A stretch of 64,000 nt of DNA, from the sequence record MH791414.1; one strand, given 5' to 3'. Made by a program: the position numbers and the translations under genes. Positions 3,973 to 11,533 of this stretch are shown here, piece by piece. The notes beneath the pieces are model-generated. The model worked only from the letters and a program-made list of their open reading frames with translations. It did no database searches and was not told the DNA's origin. Position 1 is the stretch's first letter. Every line of letters starts with the position of its first letter.

Positions 3973-4420
3973 AAGACTTCAAAGTCTTTTCTATTTTACG
4001 TCTTTTCTTAACACCTAACGAAGCAGGACCTTTATCTACAATATCACCAGACTTGACACCAGAAGCAATATTAGTTGGATCGCCATCTGCATCCCCAGCT
4101 ACCATTGCTTCATATAAAGCCTCTATAGACTGCTCTGGCTGTCCGTAGCGTTCGGTAAGGGCATTGTATCCCGCCTTAGCCGCAAACAGATTAGCGGCTG
4201 TCTGACCACCGTATTTTTGCAATCCCTGTTTTAGTGTCCGGATTGTAGAATGAAAAGATGTATAAGCAGACTTTTCCCTAACTGTATCGGGTCGTTTGAT
4301 GAGGTTACCTTGATCGTCAATTAGCCCCAATTTACAAGCTTCCCAATTCCTGAAGGGTTTTCTTATTAAGTCTATCATACGTGCAGCGTATACCGCATCC
4401 ATAACCCTTTTGATTGACAT
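3971..4420 (-). CDS. 61.1: gp61.1-like protein whose C-terminus resembles the mature capsid N-arm
   Basis: lies between 41 and 61; MVAGD...IASG..SG...KGP tail typical of 61.1; CTAAATA at 4457..4463 upstream. Confidence 0.75.
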   Translation of the reverse strand: MSIKRVMDAVYAARMIDLIRKPFRNWEACKLGLIDDQGNLIKRPDTVREKSAYTSFHSTIRTLKQGLQKYGGQTAANLFAAKAGYNALTERYGQPEQSIEALYEAMVAGDADGDPTNIASGVKSGDIVDKGPASLGVKKRRKIEKTLKS

Positions 4421-4459
4421 ATATTTTTCCTTTTAAAAAGGGGATTACCCCCTATTTAT

Positions 4460-6028
4460 TTAGTCATCCCAAGGTGCAGAATCTTCATCGATCATCCCGG
4501 CGATATCTTCGTTAAAATCGATTTGGACCTTACTTAGATTGCGTTTGAACAGAACCGGTCCCAGTGGTTTGGTATCGATAATGTCGGCGATTTCTGGCTC
4601 TATTTCAACAGCCACCGAAGTCACATCATCACCCTTACGAACAACGATAGAGTCGGCGCTAATATCCGAGCGTTCTTCTAGATCTTTTCTCTCGTAAACA
4701 ACCGTATATGGTGCAGTATCATCAAGATCTGACCAACGCATTTTACCCTTTTCAACCACCATACAGAATTTGTTATGGGTGTTGATATCACCATATCGGG
4801 ACTTCAATTGTTTGAACAATTGCTGACCAAGGGAGATAAGGTCTTCGTCTTCGGAAATCGCCAATACGAAATCGCAACCATGAAGGAGAGCATACGAATC
4901 TGCAATGTCGGCTTTGTCAATTTCAAGACTACCAGATGACCCACGGTTTGTTTGAGCACCGGACCACGCAACGATTTTCTTTTCAATTGCCAAACCACGG
5001 ACTTCCTCGGAAATCGCTTTGATGAAGGAATATGAATTGTCAGAAAACTTCATCCGAGACGAAGCCATGATACCAAGATAGTCTACCATGATAACATCAG
5101 GTTTAAAACCCTTTTTCATCTCCAATTCATCCATCAGGTTTCTGATGTGATTTACGTTGGCTCCCGAAGTAGGAAATTGTTTAACAAACAATTTACCAAG
5201 TTTTTTGCCAAGAACCTTTTTATTAAAACGGTTCATGAACTCGGATTTTTGAACCAGACCACTATCCAGATCATCGAGAGAAATATCCATCAGGTTAGCG
5301 TCAATACGTTTACCTACGGTTTCTTCGCTCATCTCAAACGATACATATAGGACGTTAAGTCCGAGCTGCAAATATTCAGTTGCAAGGTGACACAAACCGA
5401 TAGACTTACCAACACCAGTACCGGCAAGAATAACGTTCAACGTACCCAGTTCGACCCCACCTTTCGTAATCCGGTTTAACATATGATTTAGGAAAGGGAT
5501 CTTGTTTGTTTTCTTATTATAGGACTCCCAGCGATCTTCTGCTTGTGCCATATAATCATGACCAATGTCAAAAGTAAATCCAACTGACAAGGCAGTTTTC
5601 ATAATTTCTGGAATAGCGCCGATATCCTTTATTTTCTTGTCTTGCTCGTCAAGGGGCTTAGAAAAGTTTTCTCTAATTTGAATACATTCGGAAATAGCGA
5701 TATCCATAGCTCTTTCCTGACAGAACTTTTCTGTTTCCTCAACCAACCATTTAGGATCTTCCGGAATTTGTTCAATTCTGGAAATCAATACCTTACTTTG
5801 GTCATATTCTACCTGACTAATATTTTGTTTCTTTTCAATCATTACACCCAGCGCATTAACGGAAGGTGCTTTATTATGCTTTTTTGCATATTCATGGATC
5901 ATCTCGAATGCAATTCGATATGGACCCCTAGCAAAGTATTCAGGTTTCAAAAATGGATATACTTTACCAAAAAATTCGCTGTTATAGACCAGATTATTAA
6001 TAATGATCTGGGACATACTGACACTCAT
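4460..6028 (-). CDS. 41: replicative helicase gp41
   Basis: Walker A AGTGVGKS, VDYLGIM, QTNR and KSRYGD motifs; start at ATG 6028 behind GAGG. Confidence 0.97.
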   Translation of the reverse strand: MSVSMSQIIINNLVYNSEFFGKVYPFLKPEYFARGPYRIAFEMIHEYAKKHNKAPSVNALGVMIEKKQNISQVEYDQSKVLISRIEQIPEDPKWLVEETEKFCQERAMDIAISECIQIRENFSKPLDEQDKKIKDIGAIPEIMKTALSVGFTFDIGHDYMAQAEDRWESYNKKTNKIPFLNHMLNRITKGGVELGTLNVILAGTGVGKSIGLCHLATEYLQLGLNVLYVSFEMSEETVGKRIDANLMDISLDDLDSGLVQKSEFMNRFNKKVLGKKLGKLFVKQFPTSGANVNHIRNLMDELEMKKGFKPDVIMVDYLGIMASSRMKFSDNSYSFIKAISEEVRGLAIEKKIVAWSGAQTNRGSSGSLEIDKADIADSYALLHGCDFVLAISEDEDLISLGQQLFKQLKSRYGDINTHNKFCMVVEKGKMRWSDLDDTAPYTVVYERKDLEERSDISADSIVVRKGDDVTSVAVEIEPEIADIIDTKPLGPVLFKRNLSKVQIDFNEDIAGMIDEDSAPWDD

Positions 6029-6052
6029 AAAAATCCTCTTATCTAACGAAAA

Positions 6053-6088
6053 CACCCACGTTTCAAATTTTGGTTCGGAACGTGGGTG
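6053..6088 (-). terminator. 10-bp stem hairpin in the gp41 leader
   Basis: cacccacgtt...aacgtgggtg, followed by TTTT on the minus strand. Confidence 0.55.
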
Positions 6089-6103
6089 ATACTTACTTAC
6101 ATT

Positions 6104-6622
6104 TTAACGTATTTTTGCAGGAACATGAAGTATACCGGTGTCGTTCAACACAAAAGGCTTGTCGTCCTTGGTCAAGATGTTCATCCAGAACTTCGCTTTA
6201 TACTTTGGAGTTTTCTTAACACGAGTCATACGCCGCGTGATCTGACCGTCTGGCATAGCATAGTGAGACACCATTAACGCCTGTCTTTCACCAACGAAGT
6301 CATAGAAGCTTAGAACCATATGGTTCTCACAGCACAACCACGACTTTCCGTTTTCCATAGTGATTTCCCACACTTCCGGGTTAAACGGCTCGGTAAATTC
6401 AGTGTCTACCATTCTGGTAATCTCTGCATATTCACCGGTTTTGGTTGATGGCAAAAGAACGGTATAACCATAGATAATTTGCATTACCTGATACATTGTC
6501 CAAGTAGTTGGGCGCATATCACCCCACATTTCAGGACAATAGAACGTTACTAGGGTATCTTCTGGAAACCCGTTAATATCATAACAGTCATTACGATCAC
6601 ATTCTCTGGTTACTTCAGTCAT
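6104..6622 (-). CDS. free-standing Hint/intein-like domain protein, catalytically degenerate
   Basis: GFPEDTLV (block A-like), VWEITMENGKSWLCCENHMVL (block B-like), NILTKDDKPFVLNDTGILH (block F/G-like); AAGGA SD before ATG 6622. Confidence 0.65.
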   Translation of the reverse strand: MTEVTRECDRNDCYDINGFPEDTLVTFYCPEMWGDMRPTTWTMYQVMQIIYGYTVLLPSTKTGEYAEITRMVDTEFTEPFNPEVWEITMENGKSWLCCENHMVLSFYDFVGERQALMVSHYAMPDGQITRRMTRVKKTPKYKAKFWMNILTKDDKPFVLNDTGILHVPAKIR

Positions 6623-6623
6623 T

Positions 6624-6908
6624 TTATTTCCTTTTGAAAATATCAAGGAATCGAATATACCAAGGTTTGGCTTCTTCGAAATTAAATTGAGCAATCAAGG
6701 CACGTTGAACATGTGGAAATAGAATTTCCTTCTCTTCCTCATGTGGTGTAGACCAATCAATATGCATTTTACCGTCATGAAATTGGACATCATGGACATA
6801 AGTTAGATAATGATCATCTCCAATACGAATAACCAACTCTTGGGTGACATTGCGCAATGCTTCCTTAATAATGTCTTTGTATTTATTTTCGTTATACTCT
6901 TCTTCCAT
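6624..6908 (-). CDS. 40: head vertex assembly chaperone gp40
   Basis: QELVI...HLTYVH...IDWST...PHV motif; synteny between uvsX and 41; late promoter at 6942..6948. Confidence 0.85.
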   Translation of the reverse strand: MEEEYNENKYKDIIKEALRNVTQELVIRIGDDHYLTYVHDVQFHDGKMHIDWSTPHEEEKEILFPHVQRALIAQFNFEEAKPWYIRFLDIFKRK

Positions 6909-6944
6909 AACACATCTCAGAAGAGGTGGTTTCCCACCTCATAT

Positions 6945-7361
6945 TTAGGGGATGATATTAAATTTAGTTCTATTTGTGTATACAACCGGTGCGACAATCT
7001 CATCAAAGTCGGTTTGGTGCTGAAACCCATCTTGAACTAGAAGATGACTATAACCCCGTCCCCTTAGATCCATTGGGTGTTTCACCACAATAAAACGAGA
7101 CATATTTTGCAATTTCATGGATTTTACACAGTCTTGAATAATTTTATTATCGAATACCTCATTTAATTTTTTAATTTGGTATTTGATCTCATCAAATATT
7201 CGACCTCGGTTAGGTTCCATTATAATTACAGTCTTAAACTCACCAAAATATGCGTCATAAACTGCTTTGGTTGTTGGGTCATCAAAAAATCCAAAATGAG
7301 TTAGATAGTATCCGTAGTCGTCACGAAGGTGTATGAACAGCTGTATTTCTTCTTCAGTCAT
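6945..7361 (-). CDS. hypothetical protein inserted between uvsX and 40
   Basis: ORF of about 138 aa from MTEEEI. Confidence 0.7.
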   Translation of the reverse strand: MTEEEIQLFIHLRDDYGYYLTHFGFFDDPTTKAVYDAYFGEFKTVIIMEPNRGRIFDEIKYQIKKLNEVFDNKIIQDCVKSMKLQNMSRFIVVKHPMDLRGRGYSHLLVQDGFQHQTDFDEIVAPVVYTNRTKFNIIP

Positions 7362-7404
7362 TTTGTGTTCCAATAGGGGGTTCAAGCCCCCCATTTATGG
7401 TTAA

Positions 7405-8514
7405 TTAGCCGAAAAGTTCTTCTACTTCGTCGAATACTTCTTGGGATACCTCAACCGATTTGAGTTTATACAATTCAGTACAAGCACGTTTAAATGGTTC
7501 GTGTGCAAACAGAGGTTTCCAGAACTCAAGAGAATTTGTTTCCACCTCAGTCCATTTCGGTTCATCTTCAGAGATGATACTAAGTTCCCCGGTTTCTTCG
7601 TCCAATAGGTATCTCTGGAAGCGGGCATTTTGTGGTTTATCAACAAACCCAAGGTCCAGCGCCAGTTCCAACATACCAGAGTATGTATTAATACCACCTT
7701 CGAACGTAACTTGCAAGGGGAGCTTCGATTTTTCCTTGATATAACGACTCTTCTCGGCGTTCATGATGAAATTATAACCAAGAAGCTCTTTACCATCTTT
7801 CTCTTGTTGTTTACCAAGAATAATAACGGTATCAGCTGAATACATCGGACCAGTACCACCAGACATAACAGTTTTACTGAACATCTCTTGTGTTTCATAG
7901 GTGTGGTTTACGGCAATACATGGAATATCGAGCACAGTCAGATATGGAGTAACCATACGGAAAAGACTCTTGATCTGTTTTGCTCGGGTCATATCTTGTG
8001 CAGATTTTTCTGATTTTGCATCTTCTAGTTCTTTCTTGGATGCGACGTTACCAATGGAATCAATAAAGATAATTACTTTATCGCCACGATTGATAGCTTC
8101 CAGCTTTTTAACAATGTCGAACTTAAGTTCTTCCACGTCAACAAACGGACAATGGACAACTCGGTTAATATCAACCCCCTGAGAGGTAAAATAGTCCGGG
8201 GTAGAACCAAACTCGTTATCGAAGAACAGACAAACCGCGTCTTTATACTTACGAAGATATGCAGATACCAACACCAAACTGAGATTTGATTTAAAGTGTT
8301 TCGATGGACCAGCAATACAGGTTAAACCGGGTTTTAGACCGCCGTCAAGATAACCAGACAACATCAGGTTAATAATGGGAACCCGAGTTCGAATCACATC
8401 TTTATCATTAAAGAATGTACTCTCTTTTAACATAGAACTCATTTTGTTAGATGAAGTTCCTACAAGACGTTCCAGAAGTGCACCAGTATTAGCAGTTTTT
8501 GCTTTTTTTGCCAT
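7405..8514 (-). CDS. uvsX: RecA-like recombinase UvsX
   Basis: Walker A AGPSKHFKS, DSIGN and SGGTGPMYSAD motifs. Confidence 0.97.
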   Translation of the reverse strand: MAKKAKTANTGALLERLVGTSSNKMSSMLKESTFFNDKDVIRTRVPIINLMLSGYLDGGLKPGLTCIAGPSKHFKSNLSLVLVSAYLRKYKDAVCLFFDNEFGSTPDYFTSQGVDINRVVHCPFVDVEELKFDIVKKLEAINRGDKVIIFIDSIGNVASKKELEDAKSEKSAQDMTRAKQIKSLFRMVTPYLTVLDIPCIAVNHTYETQEMFSKTVMSGGTGPMYSADTVIILGKQQEKDGKELLGYNFIMNAEKSRYIKEKSKLPLQVTFEGGINTYSGMLELALDLGFVDKPQNARFQRYLLDEETGELSIISEDEPKWTEVETNSLEFWKPLFAHEPFKRACTELYKLKSVEVSQEVFDEVEELFG

Positions 8515-8582: not shown

Positions 8583-9755
8583 TTAGAAGTCGAACAAGTC
8601 TTCAAGAGAAGTAGTTTTTTCTTGAGTCCAACAAACAGCGTCACAAATAGCCTGTAACGGTTTTTGGAAGTGCTTGCAATACATCCCTACGAAATCAATA
8701 TCCTTTTCTGGAATTATCCCAAAATCTTCAGGAATTTTATCACCAGAAGGCCACGCGATTGTTTCGATGTGGAATTTATTAGGAACCTTCAACATCGCAT
8801 ACTGGATTTTTTCACCAGAACGGATCGGGTCCACATAACTTCCTTTTTCTGTCAGGTCATGGCAAATCTTGTTGTAGTTGATCGCAGCTCTAACGTGACC
8901 GGGACAACCACTAACAGGAGTAAAGTTTTCATGATTCTTTTCGATGTTATTGGCACTACTTACTTGTGCAATACGTCTATAATCCTGCTTACTGTACTCG
9001 TCACGGACTTTCTCAACATGGTTGTGTAGGTCGGTCTCGGTCTGTGTCAGGATGATGTCTATGGCGGTTTCAAGCTGTTCTGACGCGAATGGTGGTGTGC
9101 TACTACGTCTAGTTTCGATACCCATGATCTTGAGCTTAGGAACCACATTACCATGTTCGTCAATTTTTCTCTTACCTTCGTTATCCCAAACAGAAAGAGC
9201 ATATCGCTTTTTCTTAGTCCAGAATCCACGAGTTGCGATTACTTCTCGGTCCATAAACAGTTTATGATCGAAATAGTTCATATAGTCTTTCAATTCTCTA
9301 TATGACGCATCAATATAAGGTTCTACTTTTTCTTTTGCGAAACGATCTAGCAAATCAACCCATTCAATAACTGGAACATCACCGATTTCAACCCCACGCT
9401 TTTTAGCTAGAAGTTTTACAATCCCATCGGCTCGAACATATTGTGAGTCAGTATCACAATATACAACATAATCGATTCCACTTGTCCCACACAACTTATT
9501 GAAATACTCATTGGTCTTTCTGGAAATCCATTTAATTGCAAGTTGTCCACCCATGGTAATAGATTCCGCCATTCTGAGGTCATAATATCTACCTACCGGG
9601 TGACCCAAAGAACCATAAAGTGAGTTAATCAATACCTTTTTTGCTTGTTGGGTGACGTTACACACCTTTTCGTATTTTCTACAATCTGAAATGAGCTGCT
9701 TTAGCTCATCATCAGACATATTATGAAGTTGTTCATCAGTATAATCTAGATTCAT
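8583..9755 (-). CDS. 43B: DNA polymerase B, C-terminal subunit gp43B
   Basis: KVLINSLYG, YCDTDS and KKRYAL motifs; PIP-like C-terminus SLEDLFDF. Confidence 0.95.
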   Translation of the reverse strand: MNLDYTDEQLHNMSDDELKQLISDCRKYEKVCNVTQQAKKVLINSLYGSLGHPVGRYYDLRMAESITMGGQLAIKWISRKTNEYFNKLCGTSGIDYVVYCDTDSQYVRADGIVKLLAKKRGVEIGDVPVIEWVDLLDRFAKEKVEPYIDASYRELKDYMNYFDHKLFMDREVIATRGFWTKKKRYALSVWDNEGKRKIDEHGNVVPKLKIMGIETRRSSTPPFASEQLETAIDIILTQTETDLHNHVEKVRDEYSKQDYRRIAQVSSANNIEKNHENFTPVSGCPGHVRAAINYNKICHDLTEKGSYVDPIRSGEKIQYAMLKVPNKFHIETIAWPSGDKIPEDFGIIPEKDIDFVGMYCKHFQKPLQAICDAVCWTQEKTTSLEDLFDF

Positions 9756-9919
9756 CGACGCGCACTCACTTCTATATCGTTAATAATAAAATCCATACTA
9801 TTACAATCCATATCATAATAAGGATTTGAACCATTCTCGATAATGGTATTTTTTCTGTGATTTAGAAAATCTTTCATCCGTTGGATTGTTGCTTGGCTAA
9901 CAGGCTGAAATAAAAACAT
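9752..9919 (-). CDS. small ORF between 43A and 43B (55 aa from in-frame ATG; possibly 63 aa through a -1 shift from ATG 9942)
   Basis: stop overlaps the gp43B start (ATGA); SD-positioned ATG at 9942 is out of frame by one base. Confidence 0.55.
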   Translation of the reverse strand: MFLFQPVSQATIQRMKDFLNHRKNTIIENGSNPYYDMDCNSMDFIINDIEVSARR

Positions 9920-9947
9920 CGCTTTGAATTCTTCTAAATCATATTTT

Positions 9948-11465
9948 TTATCCGTGTCGTTCTGCAAGGATACGTGCGGCTCGTGTAGCAAGTGCATCAG
10001 CTTTAAACTCCTCTTTTTTGGCATCTTTACGTTGCAAGAATACTTTTTCTACTTCAATCGGAAGAAAACCGCGCTTCGCGTTGTCGTATCGAACACCGTT
10101 TGCTGCAACAGAATATTTTCCTTCGTGTGGTACTTCATATTGTTTGGTAACTAAACCCATACCCTCAATATCTGGAACCATACGGTCTTTAACTAGAATT
10201 TTTGGGAAATCTAATTGGTCAACCAAAGTCTCAGGAGAAATATTCTCAGACATGATGATGTGTGGATACAGAGAAGTTAAGTCAAAAGACAACAACCACT
10301 CATACAAGCCGGGTTTTGGTTCTTTAACAAACGCACCCGCAAACTTAGACCGTTGGGCATGTTTGTTTTCTGGAATAATTACGTGTTCTGCCAACAGGCT
10401 ATTATAAATAATAGCGTCCCATGTTTTTAGTGGGCTGAATACGTCAGGTGCGTTTATTCCCGCATAATACGAAACTGATGCAATCAGGAAGATCAAACTT
10501 AGCCGTTCTTCCAACTTCTTGATAATTTCAACGTCTCGGATCGCATAGTCAATATAAGTTTGTGGGTCTTTCGTGGCAAACATCAAATATGTTTTATATG
10601 GCATTTCCACTTTATTAATACCCAGCTCACATTCCGCGATTGTATCCAACTTATAGTTTGGTCTGGTTGTGAATGTAAATTTCTTATATGCAGCCATGAA
10701 ATCAACACAGTTAACACCCTGAATGACATAAGTAACCACATCATCATCGTTGTCGTCTTTTGATATAACCTGTGTGGTCTCTCCAAACGGTGAAAGTTTA
10801 TGGATAAATCTCTCACCAAGCACCTTTTTAATACGACCAATCACATAAGGAATATCAAAGAATTCACTATTCCAACCGCTTAGATAATGCGGTGTGTTGG
10901 TAACAAAAAATTGCAAGAACTTAACCAAAACGTCTTTTTCGGATTCACACTTGATATATTCAACGTCATGTAGAACTTTACCATCAATGATTGATTTTTC
11001 TACATCCCATTCGCGAGTTGTCCAGATATAGTATTTCTTTTTCTTTGTACTATAGATCTGAATTGTATCAATTTCATATTCATGTTCTATTGCATGTGGG
11101 AAAGGTCCATCGGTTGGGACCTCGATATCCAAAAACATGATATCAAGCATAGTGTAATCATAAACAGAATTAGCCCCATAAGTATCAGAAATATACTGGA
11201 ATGTATAATTGTCCATTCCCAATACTTCTTTACCCATAGACTGCATCTCTTTAAACCATTTTCTAGCTTCTCCAATAGAATCTAGTGATTTGGGAAGACA
11301 CCGACGACCATAGATGTCTCGATATGGAGTTTCAATGTGATCACCAACGTGGCGATATAGGGTTGGAGCGAACCTAACTTTACGAATCTGGTCTTGTCCA
11401 GCATCGTTAAAATATCGGTCATAGATGGTGTTTCCATCCATCCAAACGCTTGTATAAAAATTCAT
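9948..11465 (-). CDS. 43A: DNA polymerase B, N-terminal subunit gp43A
   Basis: ExoI FLDIE, GWNSEFFDIPY, YAIRD and SFDLTSLYP motifs; ends in the fingers helix; CAGGAG SD before ATG 11465. Confidence 0.95.
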   Translation of the reverse strand: MNFYTSVWMDGNTIYDRYFNDAGQDQIRKVRFAPTLYRHVGDHIETPYRDIYGRRCLPKSLDSIGEARKWFKEMQSMGKEVLGMDNYTFQYISDTYGANSVYDYTMLDIMFLDIEVPTDGPFPHAIEHEYEIDTIQIYSTKKKKYYIWTTREWDVEKSIIDGKVLHDVEYIKCESEKDVLVKFLQFFVTNTPHYLSGWNSEFFDIPYVIGRIKKVLGERFIHKLSPFGETTQVISKDDNDDDVVTYVIQGVNCVDFMAAYKKFTFTTRPNYKLDTIAECELGINKVEMPYKTYLMFATKDPQTYIDYAIRDVEIIKKLEERLSLIFLIASVSYYAGINAPDVFSPLKTWDAIIYNSLLAEHVIIPENKHAQRSKFAGAFVKEPKPGLYEWLLSFDLTSLYPHIIMSENISPETLVDQLDFPKILVKDRMVPDIEGMGLVTKQYEVPHEGKYSVAANGVRYDNAKRGFLPIEVEKVFLQRKDAKKEEFKADALATRAARILAERHG

Positions 11466-11483
11466 CTTATCTCCTGATAAAAA

Positions 11484-11506
11484 TTGAGGATCCGATGGAT
11501 CCTCAA
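11484..11506 (-). promoter_or_regulatory. hairpin just upstream of the 43A SD (terminator or translational-operator candidate)
   Basis: ttgaggatcc-gat-ggatcctcaa; same position as the T4 gene 43 autogenous operator. Confidence 0.5.
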
Positions 11507-11533
11507 AAAATGATAACACGTCTAACCAATCTA

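Follow-up and report, generated by a model that had tools for sequence, protein, structure and literature searches.

A free-standing gene with a predicted Hint fold at the gp40-gp41 junction of T4-like Aeromonas phages

Gene X and the gp40-gp41 junction

We studied an open reading frame (ORF) of 172 residues, here called gene X, in a stretch of 64,000 nucleotides (nt) from sequence record MH791414.1 (the window, meaning that whole stretch). X lies between the genes for the head vertex assembly chaperone gp40 and the replicative helicase gp41, and its product is predicted to carry the Hint fold known from inteins, although several residues required for protein splicing have been replaced. The reading that we favour, and regard as reasonably probable, is that X is an exapted mini-intein, i.e., a non-catalytic, stand-alone Hint protein that selection has maintained as an accessory gene specific to one clade, in T4-like phages of the Emmerichvirinae type. 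The gene and its immediate surroundings comprise the following features:

6104..6622, minus strand: gene X, 172 aa, ATG start, stop codon TAA at 6104-6106; PHROG 16672; annotated as 'hypothetical protein' (ASwh1_154); predicted free-standing Hint-fold protein
6629-6633, minus strand: Shine-Dalgarno sequence AAGGA of X, 6 nt before the ATG, within the last gp40 codons
6624..6908, minus strand: gp40, head vertex assembly chaperone, upstream neighbour of X; stop codon at 6624-6626
6045..6088, minus strand: terminator-like hairpin with U-run (stem-loop 6053-6088, U-run 6045-6052), between the X stop codon and the gp41 ribosome-binding site
4460..6028, minus strand: gp41, replicative helicase, 522 aa, uninterrupted; downstream neighbour of X

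All genes of the neighbourhood are on the minus strand, and the 4.2 kb around X are 100% identical to the Aeromonas phages Aswh_1 and ZPAH1 (Straboviridae, Emmerichvirinae). X is a full-length match to PHROG 16672 ('unknown function'; E-value 1.3e-72, positions 2-168 of 171). The original prediction, which had been made from the letters of the window, described a 172-residue reading frame with its own Shine-Dalgarno sequence next to an intact gp41, and both parts of this description were borne out: the frame at 6104-6622 is preceded by AAGGA at 6629-6633, and gp41 runs uninterrupted from 4460 to 6028 without any match to a Hint domain.

Both phage T4 and Aeromonas phage Asfd_1 lack X: gp41 follows gp40 after 9 nt in the former and overlaps it in the latter. 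Because gp40 abuts gp41 in these two phages, X is an insertion placed exactly at the gp40/gp41 junction; it dates from the ancestor of a clade whose gp41 proteins are now down to 53-55% identity. Nine distinct loci were compared (the window, L001, L002, L004, which is phage CC2, L006, L007, L009, L010 and L013), and the gene order gp40-X-gp41 was found in all of them, down to an X identity of 23%. In each of the nine, X starts 1-5 nt past the gp40 stop codon (1 nt in the window) with its ribosome-binding site inside gp40, and a GC-rich hairpin with a U-run stands between X and gp41. The stem sequences differ between lineages, and the conserved feature is therefore the hairpin structure; nothing comparable occurs in the 9-nt gap of T4. 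The distance from the hairpin to the start of gp41 is too short to hold a promoter; gp41 transcripts must therefore either come from read-through of the hairpin or contain it in their leader. X is physically upstream of gp41 but by layout attached to gp40, so that the attachment to gp41 assumed in the original prediction was not supported: X follows gp40 almost without a gap, and the hairpin separates it from the helicase gene.

The hairpin between X and gp41 may control how strongly the upstream genes are expressed relative to gp41, either as an attenuator or through RNA stability. A fusion of gp40 and X by read-through or frameshifting was also considered and rejected, because with a gap of 1-5 nt the relative frame of the two genes changes from locus to locus. 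Within 3 kb of X there is no motif of a T4-type late promoter, and sigma-70-like sites near X are no more frequent than in shuffled sequence.

Predicted Hint fold and replaced splicing residues

Structure models gave the clearest view of the X product. The AlphaFold model of the window copy has a predicted local distance difference test score (pLDDT) of 73.7 and a predicted template modelling score (pTM) of 0.70, and the model of P0008, the most distant X relative (23% identical), reaches 92.4 and 0.87, respectively. When the window model was compared with the PDB by Foldseek, the top 50 matches were exclusively inteins, BIL domains and hedgehog Hint domains, the best being the VidaL intein (E-value 1.4e-5, probability 1.00, target-normalised TM score 0.73); the top 50 for P0008 were likewise exclusively intein, BIL or Hint structures, with E-values down to 2.1e-6 and TM scores up to 0.78. 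In a fold search of BFVD with the X model, the orthologue from phage CC2 came first (TM score 0.84), followed by inteins inside phage DnaB, terminase, polymerase and ribonucleotide reductase proteins. Both models show X as a predicted Hint (horseshoe beta) protein, as the original prediction had proposed.

Sequence profiles pointed in the same direction. A six-member X profile searched against 1.84 billion representative proteins found, outside the family itself, only two multi-intein phage proteins, P0009 and P0010 (E-values 1.4e-4 and 3.5e-4), with three matches per protein, each at block B of an intein; in the reverse direction, both proteins match PHROG 16672. A profile built from four of the mini-inteins of P0009 and P0010 placed X first among the 410 six-frame ORFs of the window (E-value 2e-4), and a global alignment of the X family with these four by hhalign matched X residues 18-167 to intein residues 1-142 (E-value 1.3e-5). 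This end-to-end correspondence agrees with the mini-intein size stated in the original prediction. The best PDB match by X sequence profile was the gp41-1 intein, confined to about 20 residues of block B and not significant alone (E-value 0.66 with six sequences, 0.1 with eight); the block-B likeness to gp41-1 named in the original prediction thus stood insofar as gp41-1 ranks first, but it fell short in length and significance.

Searches with single sequences (Pfam, NCBIfam, and phmmer against the PDB) returned chance-level matches only, such as beta-trefoil designs, a xylanase and AftA_C. The gathering thresholds of PF14890 (Intein_splicing), PF01079 (Hint) and PF07591 (PT-HINT) were not reached; the window copy had no match to them, and one of the eight X members came to an E-value of 0.041 for PF14890. 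No endonuclease domain of the LAGLIDADG or HNH type was detected between blocks B and F by family search, model or alignment, and only about 20 residues lie between the two lobes, which confirms the predicted absence of an endonuclease. Within X, the following segments can be told apart:

6572..6622, minus strand: N-terminal leader, residues 1-17, poorly conserved and of low model confidence; in place of an N-extein
6122..6571, minus strand: Hint core, residues 18-167, aligned end to end with mini-inteins
6548..6571, minus strand: block-A-like GFPEDTLV, residues 18-25, with Gly18 (6569-6571) where inteins have Cys/Ser1
6311..6376, minus strand: block-B-like segment, residues 83-104, with C98-E-N-H101 as the TxxH block and His101 at 6320-6322
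6182..6244, minus strand: basic segment, residues 127-147, a strand pair leading into block F
6122..6190, minus strand: block F/G-like segment, residues 145-167, with Asn148 at the block-F Asp position and His166-Val167 in place of His-Asn

Column conservation was read from an alignment of the eight X members and block correspondences from the hhalign comparison with the four mini-inteins. The three strings quoted in the original prediction are present (GFPEDTLV at 18-25, EVWEITMENGKSWLCCENHMVL at 83-104 and FWMNILTKDDKPFVLNDTGILHV at 145-167), and its block assignments, namely Gly at position 1, C-E-N-H as TxxH and the lack of a terminal Asn, were confirmed by hhalign. The first intein position, Cys or Ser in inteins, is Gly18 in the window copy and Gly in all eight members. 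The block-B Thr position is occupied by Cys98 (C, A, P or S across the family), the block-F Asp position by Asn148 (Asn or His), and the terminal Asn position by Val167 (V, Y, F, G or A); the +1 residue is Pro168 in the window copy and Ser in five of the eight members. The block-B His (His101) and the penultimate His (His166) are invariant, and nine columns are invariant altogether (M1, G18, G34, E75, P82, H101, G126, T151 and H166). None of the eight members has a Cys in block F, the signature of class 3 inteins, and the class 3 route is therefore closed to X. Judging from the alignment, the X family has lost the position-1 nucleophile, the block-B Thr, the block-F Asp and the terminal Asn, while it has kept His101 and His166, and we infer that X would be unable to perform any known splicing or cleavage chemistry.

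For these reasons X is not filed as an intein: it is not embedded in a host protein, and it has neither the first nucleophile nor the terminal Asn nor, in the window copy, the expected +1 residue. The statement that X has no extein was correct in that X is a separate ORF, but a leader of 17 residues and a tail of five residues flank the Hint core.

Distribution, intactness and selection

X was found by tblastn in 21 phage records, all of them Aeromonas phages of the genera Ishigurovirus and Ceceduovirus; even at E-values up to 10, the search of the phage collection returned only these 21 records and noise. Among 2416 gp41-bearing records, gp41 is at least 60% identical to that of the window in 21, a count equal to that of the X-bearing records. 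Metagenomic assemblies contributed four further X lineages, with identities down to 30% and 23%, and the whole family amounts to eight clusters at 90% identity. The distant members P0007 and P0008 also match PHROG 16672. A search of IMG/VR for related loci based on these two found nothing, and a word-indexed protein search with the X alignment found no further family members.

All nine loci have an intact X frame. A further record, that of phage AsSzw2 (L003, MN871441.1, flagged UNVERIFIED_ORG), has runs of N across gp40-X-gp41 and is unusable for judging gene integrity; the same runs explain an odd tblastn match of 621 nt in this record. The ratio of nonsynonymous to synonymous substitution rates (dN/dS), taken where synonymous sites are not saturated, is 0.049 for X between phage 65 and avDM6 (dS 0.45), 0.13 between CC2 and L007, and 0.09 between phage 65 and L009, and these values are comparable with those of gp40. 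X evolves faster than both of its neighbours: between the window and phage 65, dN is 0.65 for X, 0.46 for gp40 and 0.11 for gp41. As far as codon comparisons go, they show X to be under purifying selection and not decaying, and a neutral relic is rejected because of the nine intact copies, the low dN/dS and the fixed synteny. The checks by orthologues and dN/dS thus sided with the view expressed in the original prediction, that X is domesticated and not a pseudogene.

Origin, possible role and alternative explanations

X is best described as deriving from a small class 1 intein of the phage type. The original prediction had gone further and proposed that X is an intein excised from gp41 that could regulate the helicase or act as its partner, and this we consider unlikely. 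The proposal gains from the fact that X adjoins gp41 in every locus, that gp41-1 is the best PDB match by sequence profile (E-values 0.1-0.66, block B only), that the best intein-bearing BFVD match is a phage DnaB helicase, and that inteins are documented in the gp41 genes of T4-like cyanophages (PMC2677866); an acidic gp41 tail, described below, also co-occurs with X. In fold comparisons, however, gp41-1 comes only at ranks 8 and 13 with the window model and at ranks 20 and 29 with the P0008 model, behind the VidaL, BIL2, NrdJ-1, RadA, TFIIB and DnaE inteins, and the highest identity in the window-model search, 20%, belongs to NrdJ-1. Charge argues against gp41 as well. In all X members the net charge runs from -5 to -12 in the acidic N part of the core (residues 18-106) and from 0 to +7 in its neutral to basic C part (127-167); such an N-negative/C-positive polarity was described for NrdJ-1, IMPDH-1 and NrdA-2, whereas gp41-1 and gp41-8 have the opposite one (Dassa et al. 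2009; PMC2677866). Furthermore, neither an intein nor a scar was found among the gp41 genes of the clade that we examined, X lies 1-5 nt from gp40 with the hairpin before gp41, and its leader and tail are too short for a comparison with helicase sequence.

With class 1 mini-inteins such as VidaL, NrdJ-1, gp41-1, Npu DnaE and Ssp DnaB, X shares the fold (TM scores 0.6-0.78), the size, the two conserved His residues (block B and penultimate) and, in recognisable form, blocks A, B, F and G. It differs from them in standing outside any host protein, in having Gly for the first nucleophile, and in lacking the terminal Asn, the block-B Thr and the block-F Asp; sequence identity is 10-20%, and the Pfam family Intein_splicing is not reached. 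The yeast HO endonuclease is a free-standing domesticated intein that no longer splices and has a role beneficial to its host, but HO keeps and uses its endonuclease domain, whereas X has the splicing-domain fold only. BIL and hedgehog/Hog domains have the Hint fold in common with X, and Tetrahymena BIL2 is among the top fold matches; these domains are, however, parts of larger, secreted or signalling proteins and have an N-terminal nucleophile with which they process themselves, while X is free-standing and has Gly18 instead. Small Hint-only phage ORFs in BFVD (143-172 aa) resemble X in being stand-alone, of mini-intein size and of Hint fold over their whole length, but have no detectable sequence relation to it, being absent from the profile searches. 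Such entries comprise A0A2Z3EFP0 (172 aa), A0A8S5VRF6 (151 aa), A0A8S5P792 (144 aa), A0A8S5TJS4 (153 aa) and A0A1S5RCV4 (143 aa), the last from Lactobacillus phage P1, and one is labelled 'Hint module [Herelleviridae sp.]'. Judging from these predicted structures, free-standing Hint-only ORFs may recur in phages. Our literature searches found no description of the X family or of free-standing phage Hint proteins. The nearest precedent of X is Arth_1007 of Arsp-FB24, a single case of an inactive orphan intein, which is devoid of the block-B His and was judged a pseudogene (Tori and Perler 2011; PMC3196547). Both are intein-like genes of phage origin and have almost no exteins; Arth_1007 lacks splicing activity, and the same is predicted for X from its sequence. 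Unlike Arth_1007, X keeps the block-B His and forms a family with fixed synteny under purifying selection.

As a non-catalytic Hint protein, X would be co-expressed with gp40 as part of the uvsX-40 transcription unit and would act by binding, with no catalysis. It might bind through two candidate surfaces, the cleft of the relic splice junction (Gly18, His101, His166) and the basic strand pair at 127-147. X is acidic overall (isoelectric point 5.2-6.2), and in every member the net charge of residues 127-147 is +3 to +8. A possible partner for them is encoded at the 3' end of gp41:

4463-4696, minus strand: acidic C-terminal tail of gp41, residues 445-522, clade-specific, net charge -12

In all nine X-bearing phages this tail comprises 61-78 residues with a net charge of -5 to -13, whereas the gp41 proteins of T4 and Asfd_1 have shorter tails, the last 40 residues of which have a net charge of -2. 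Its last residues are P-W-D in six of nine loci, and P-W is retained close to the C-terminus in L004 and L013. CC2 and L007 are 95-100% identical across the region, with exactly two divergent patches, X and the gp41 tail: amino-acid identity is 80% for X and 81% for the tail but 99% for the gp41 core, and dS is 1.09 in X but 0.08 and 0.24 in its neighbours. The patches are sharply bounded: one (locus coordinates 4013-4540) covers X, at 59-87% nt identity, the other (5738-6145) the 3' end of gp41. L007 has a gene for a 313-residue CapR/DUF723 homing-endonuclease-like protein (6189-7130) beside the gp41 3' patch, and CC2 lacks it. For the gp41 core, phage 65 clusters with CC2, whereas its gp40, X and gp41 tail place it with L009. 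Because the long acidic tail is confined to the phages that have X, the charges are opposed and the patches in CC2/L007 and phage 65 co-vary, the long acidic tail is the preferred, though weakly held, candidate partner; a component of gp40-dependent head initiation might be another. In its specific form, that X docks via the relic cleft and the basic strand pair onto the acidic gp41 tail, as a replisome accessory factor domesticated without an endonuclease, the proposal is quite unlikely to be right as it stands, and naming the gp41 tail as the partner is a guess.

Several points weigh against our interpretation, both of the fold and of the docking. The hhalign probability for the X family against the mini-inteins is only 59%, searches of Pfam and NCBIfam with X gave no Hint or intein call, and the invariance of Gly18, His101 and His166 is unexplained in a supposedly non-catalytic protein. 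The co-occurrence of X and the acidic tail within a single clade is confounded by shared ancestry, and their co-variation rests on pairs that are not independent. The tail patch of L007 adjoins the homing-endonuclease-like insertion, which could be sufficient alone as an explanation, and the differences between CC2 and L007 in X lie mostly in the N-terminal half and not in the basic segment, which may, moreover, be just an inherited charge zipper between intein halves.

The invariance of these three residues would fit an atypical but still active autoprocessing domain that sheds its leader or tail by a non-canonical route, as would the Ser after the lost Asn position in five of the eight members and the absence of a position-1 nucleophile from inteins of classes 2 and 3 as well (PMC3196547). 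We nevertheless regard such activity as highly improbable, given that block F is without the Cys of class 3, that the terminal residue (V, Y, F, G or A) is unable to cyclise, that the +1 residue of the window copy is Pro, and that the poorly conserved leader offers no evident cargo worth releasing. No better a chance is given to a functionless relic carried between two essential genes, an orphan intein pseudogene like Arth_1007. For such a relic there is the precedent of an inactive DnaB-type intein with only 66 extein residues (PMC3196547), and X has lost catalytic residues and evolves faster than its neighbours; but a dN/dS of 0.05-0.13 at unsaturated synonymous sites, intact copies in nine of nine loci across lineages with a gp41 identity of only 53-55%, nine invariant columns at a pairwise identity of 21-23% and a conserved ribosome-binding site all speak for a maintained gene. 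X might also be a protein of phage-phage or phage-host conflict, e.g., a decoy against intein-dependent proteins of competing Aeromonas phages, since an allele replacement confined to X separates genomes that are otherwise 95-100% identical (dS 1.09 against 0.08 and 0.24), the gene and its hairpin between two core genes have the layout of an accessory-gene cassette, and inteins do occur in essential genes of Aeromonas T4-like phages (the split intein in PolB1 of Aes123, and gp17 of PX29). Recombination is, however, so frequent among T4-like phages that a local patch is weak evidence, and a split-intein fragment would find no vacant half-site in a Hint domain that is already complete and folded; a conflict role is thus very unlikely in our estimation. 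The trans-inhibition of split inteins that the original prediction had suggested is likewise unlikely, because a complete domain with no empty half makes it mechanistically awkward. The least probable of all is a Cys-based metal or redox sensor. The window copy has five Cys and C97 is kept in six of eight members, but the members have 5, 4, 5, 4, 2, 2, 1 and 0 Cys with no invariant Cys column, and P0008, which has none, gave the most confident Hint model; a Cys-rich sensor, as originally predicted, is therefore not a property of the family. A His-based metal site formed by the invariant His101 and His166 is possible.

Inteins are usually treated as pure parasites that persist, are lost precisely or decay, and the rare documented cases of intein domestication involve the endonuclease part, whereas in X the splicing-domain fold alone survives as a separate gene. 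X may thus offer a clean natural case for asking what the Hint fold does besides autoprocessing, and a predicted fold can now be given to PHROG 16672, which is annotated as 'hypothetical' in all 21 GenBank records carrying X. If X does dock on the gp41 tail, intein-derived scaffolds would be a source of new phage replication proteins.

Upstream of gp40, the neighbourhood continues as follows:

6945-7394, minus strand: hypothetical gene between uvsX and gp40
7405-8514, minus strand: uvsX
8583-9755 (43B) and about 9948-11465 (43A), minus strand: split DNA polymerase

The hypothetical gene encodes 149 residues and belongs to PHROG 20104 ('unknown function'), with no Pfam domain. The interval between uvsX and gp40 is variable, with zero to three small ORFs in related loci, and its content is completely different between CC2 and L007 as well as between phage 65 and avDM6. 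A link of X with the split DNA polymerase was considered and rejected, as Asfd_1 has a split polymerase but no X. The polymerase is divided into gp43A and gp43B (8583-11519, minus strand) without intein halves. In the window, an additional ORF of 90 residues (9752-10024) runs over the end of 43A and directly adjoins 43B; at this position it is missing from CC2 and phage 65.

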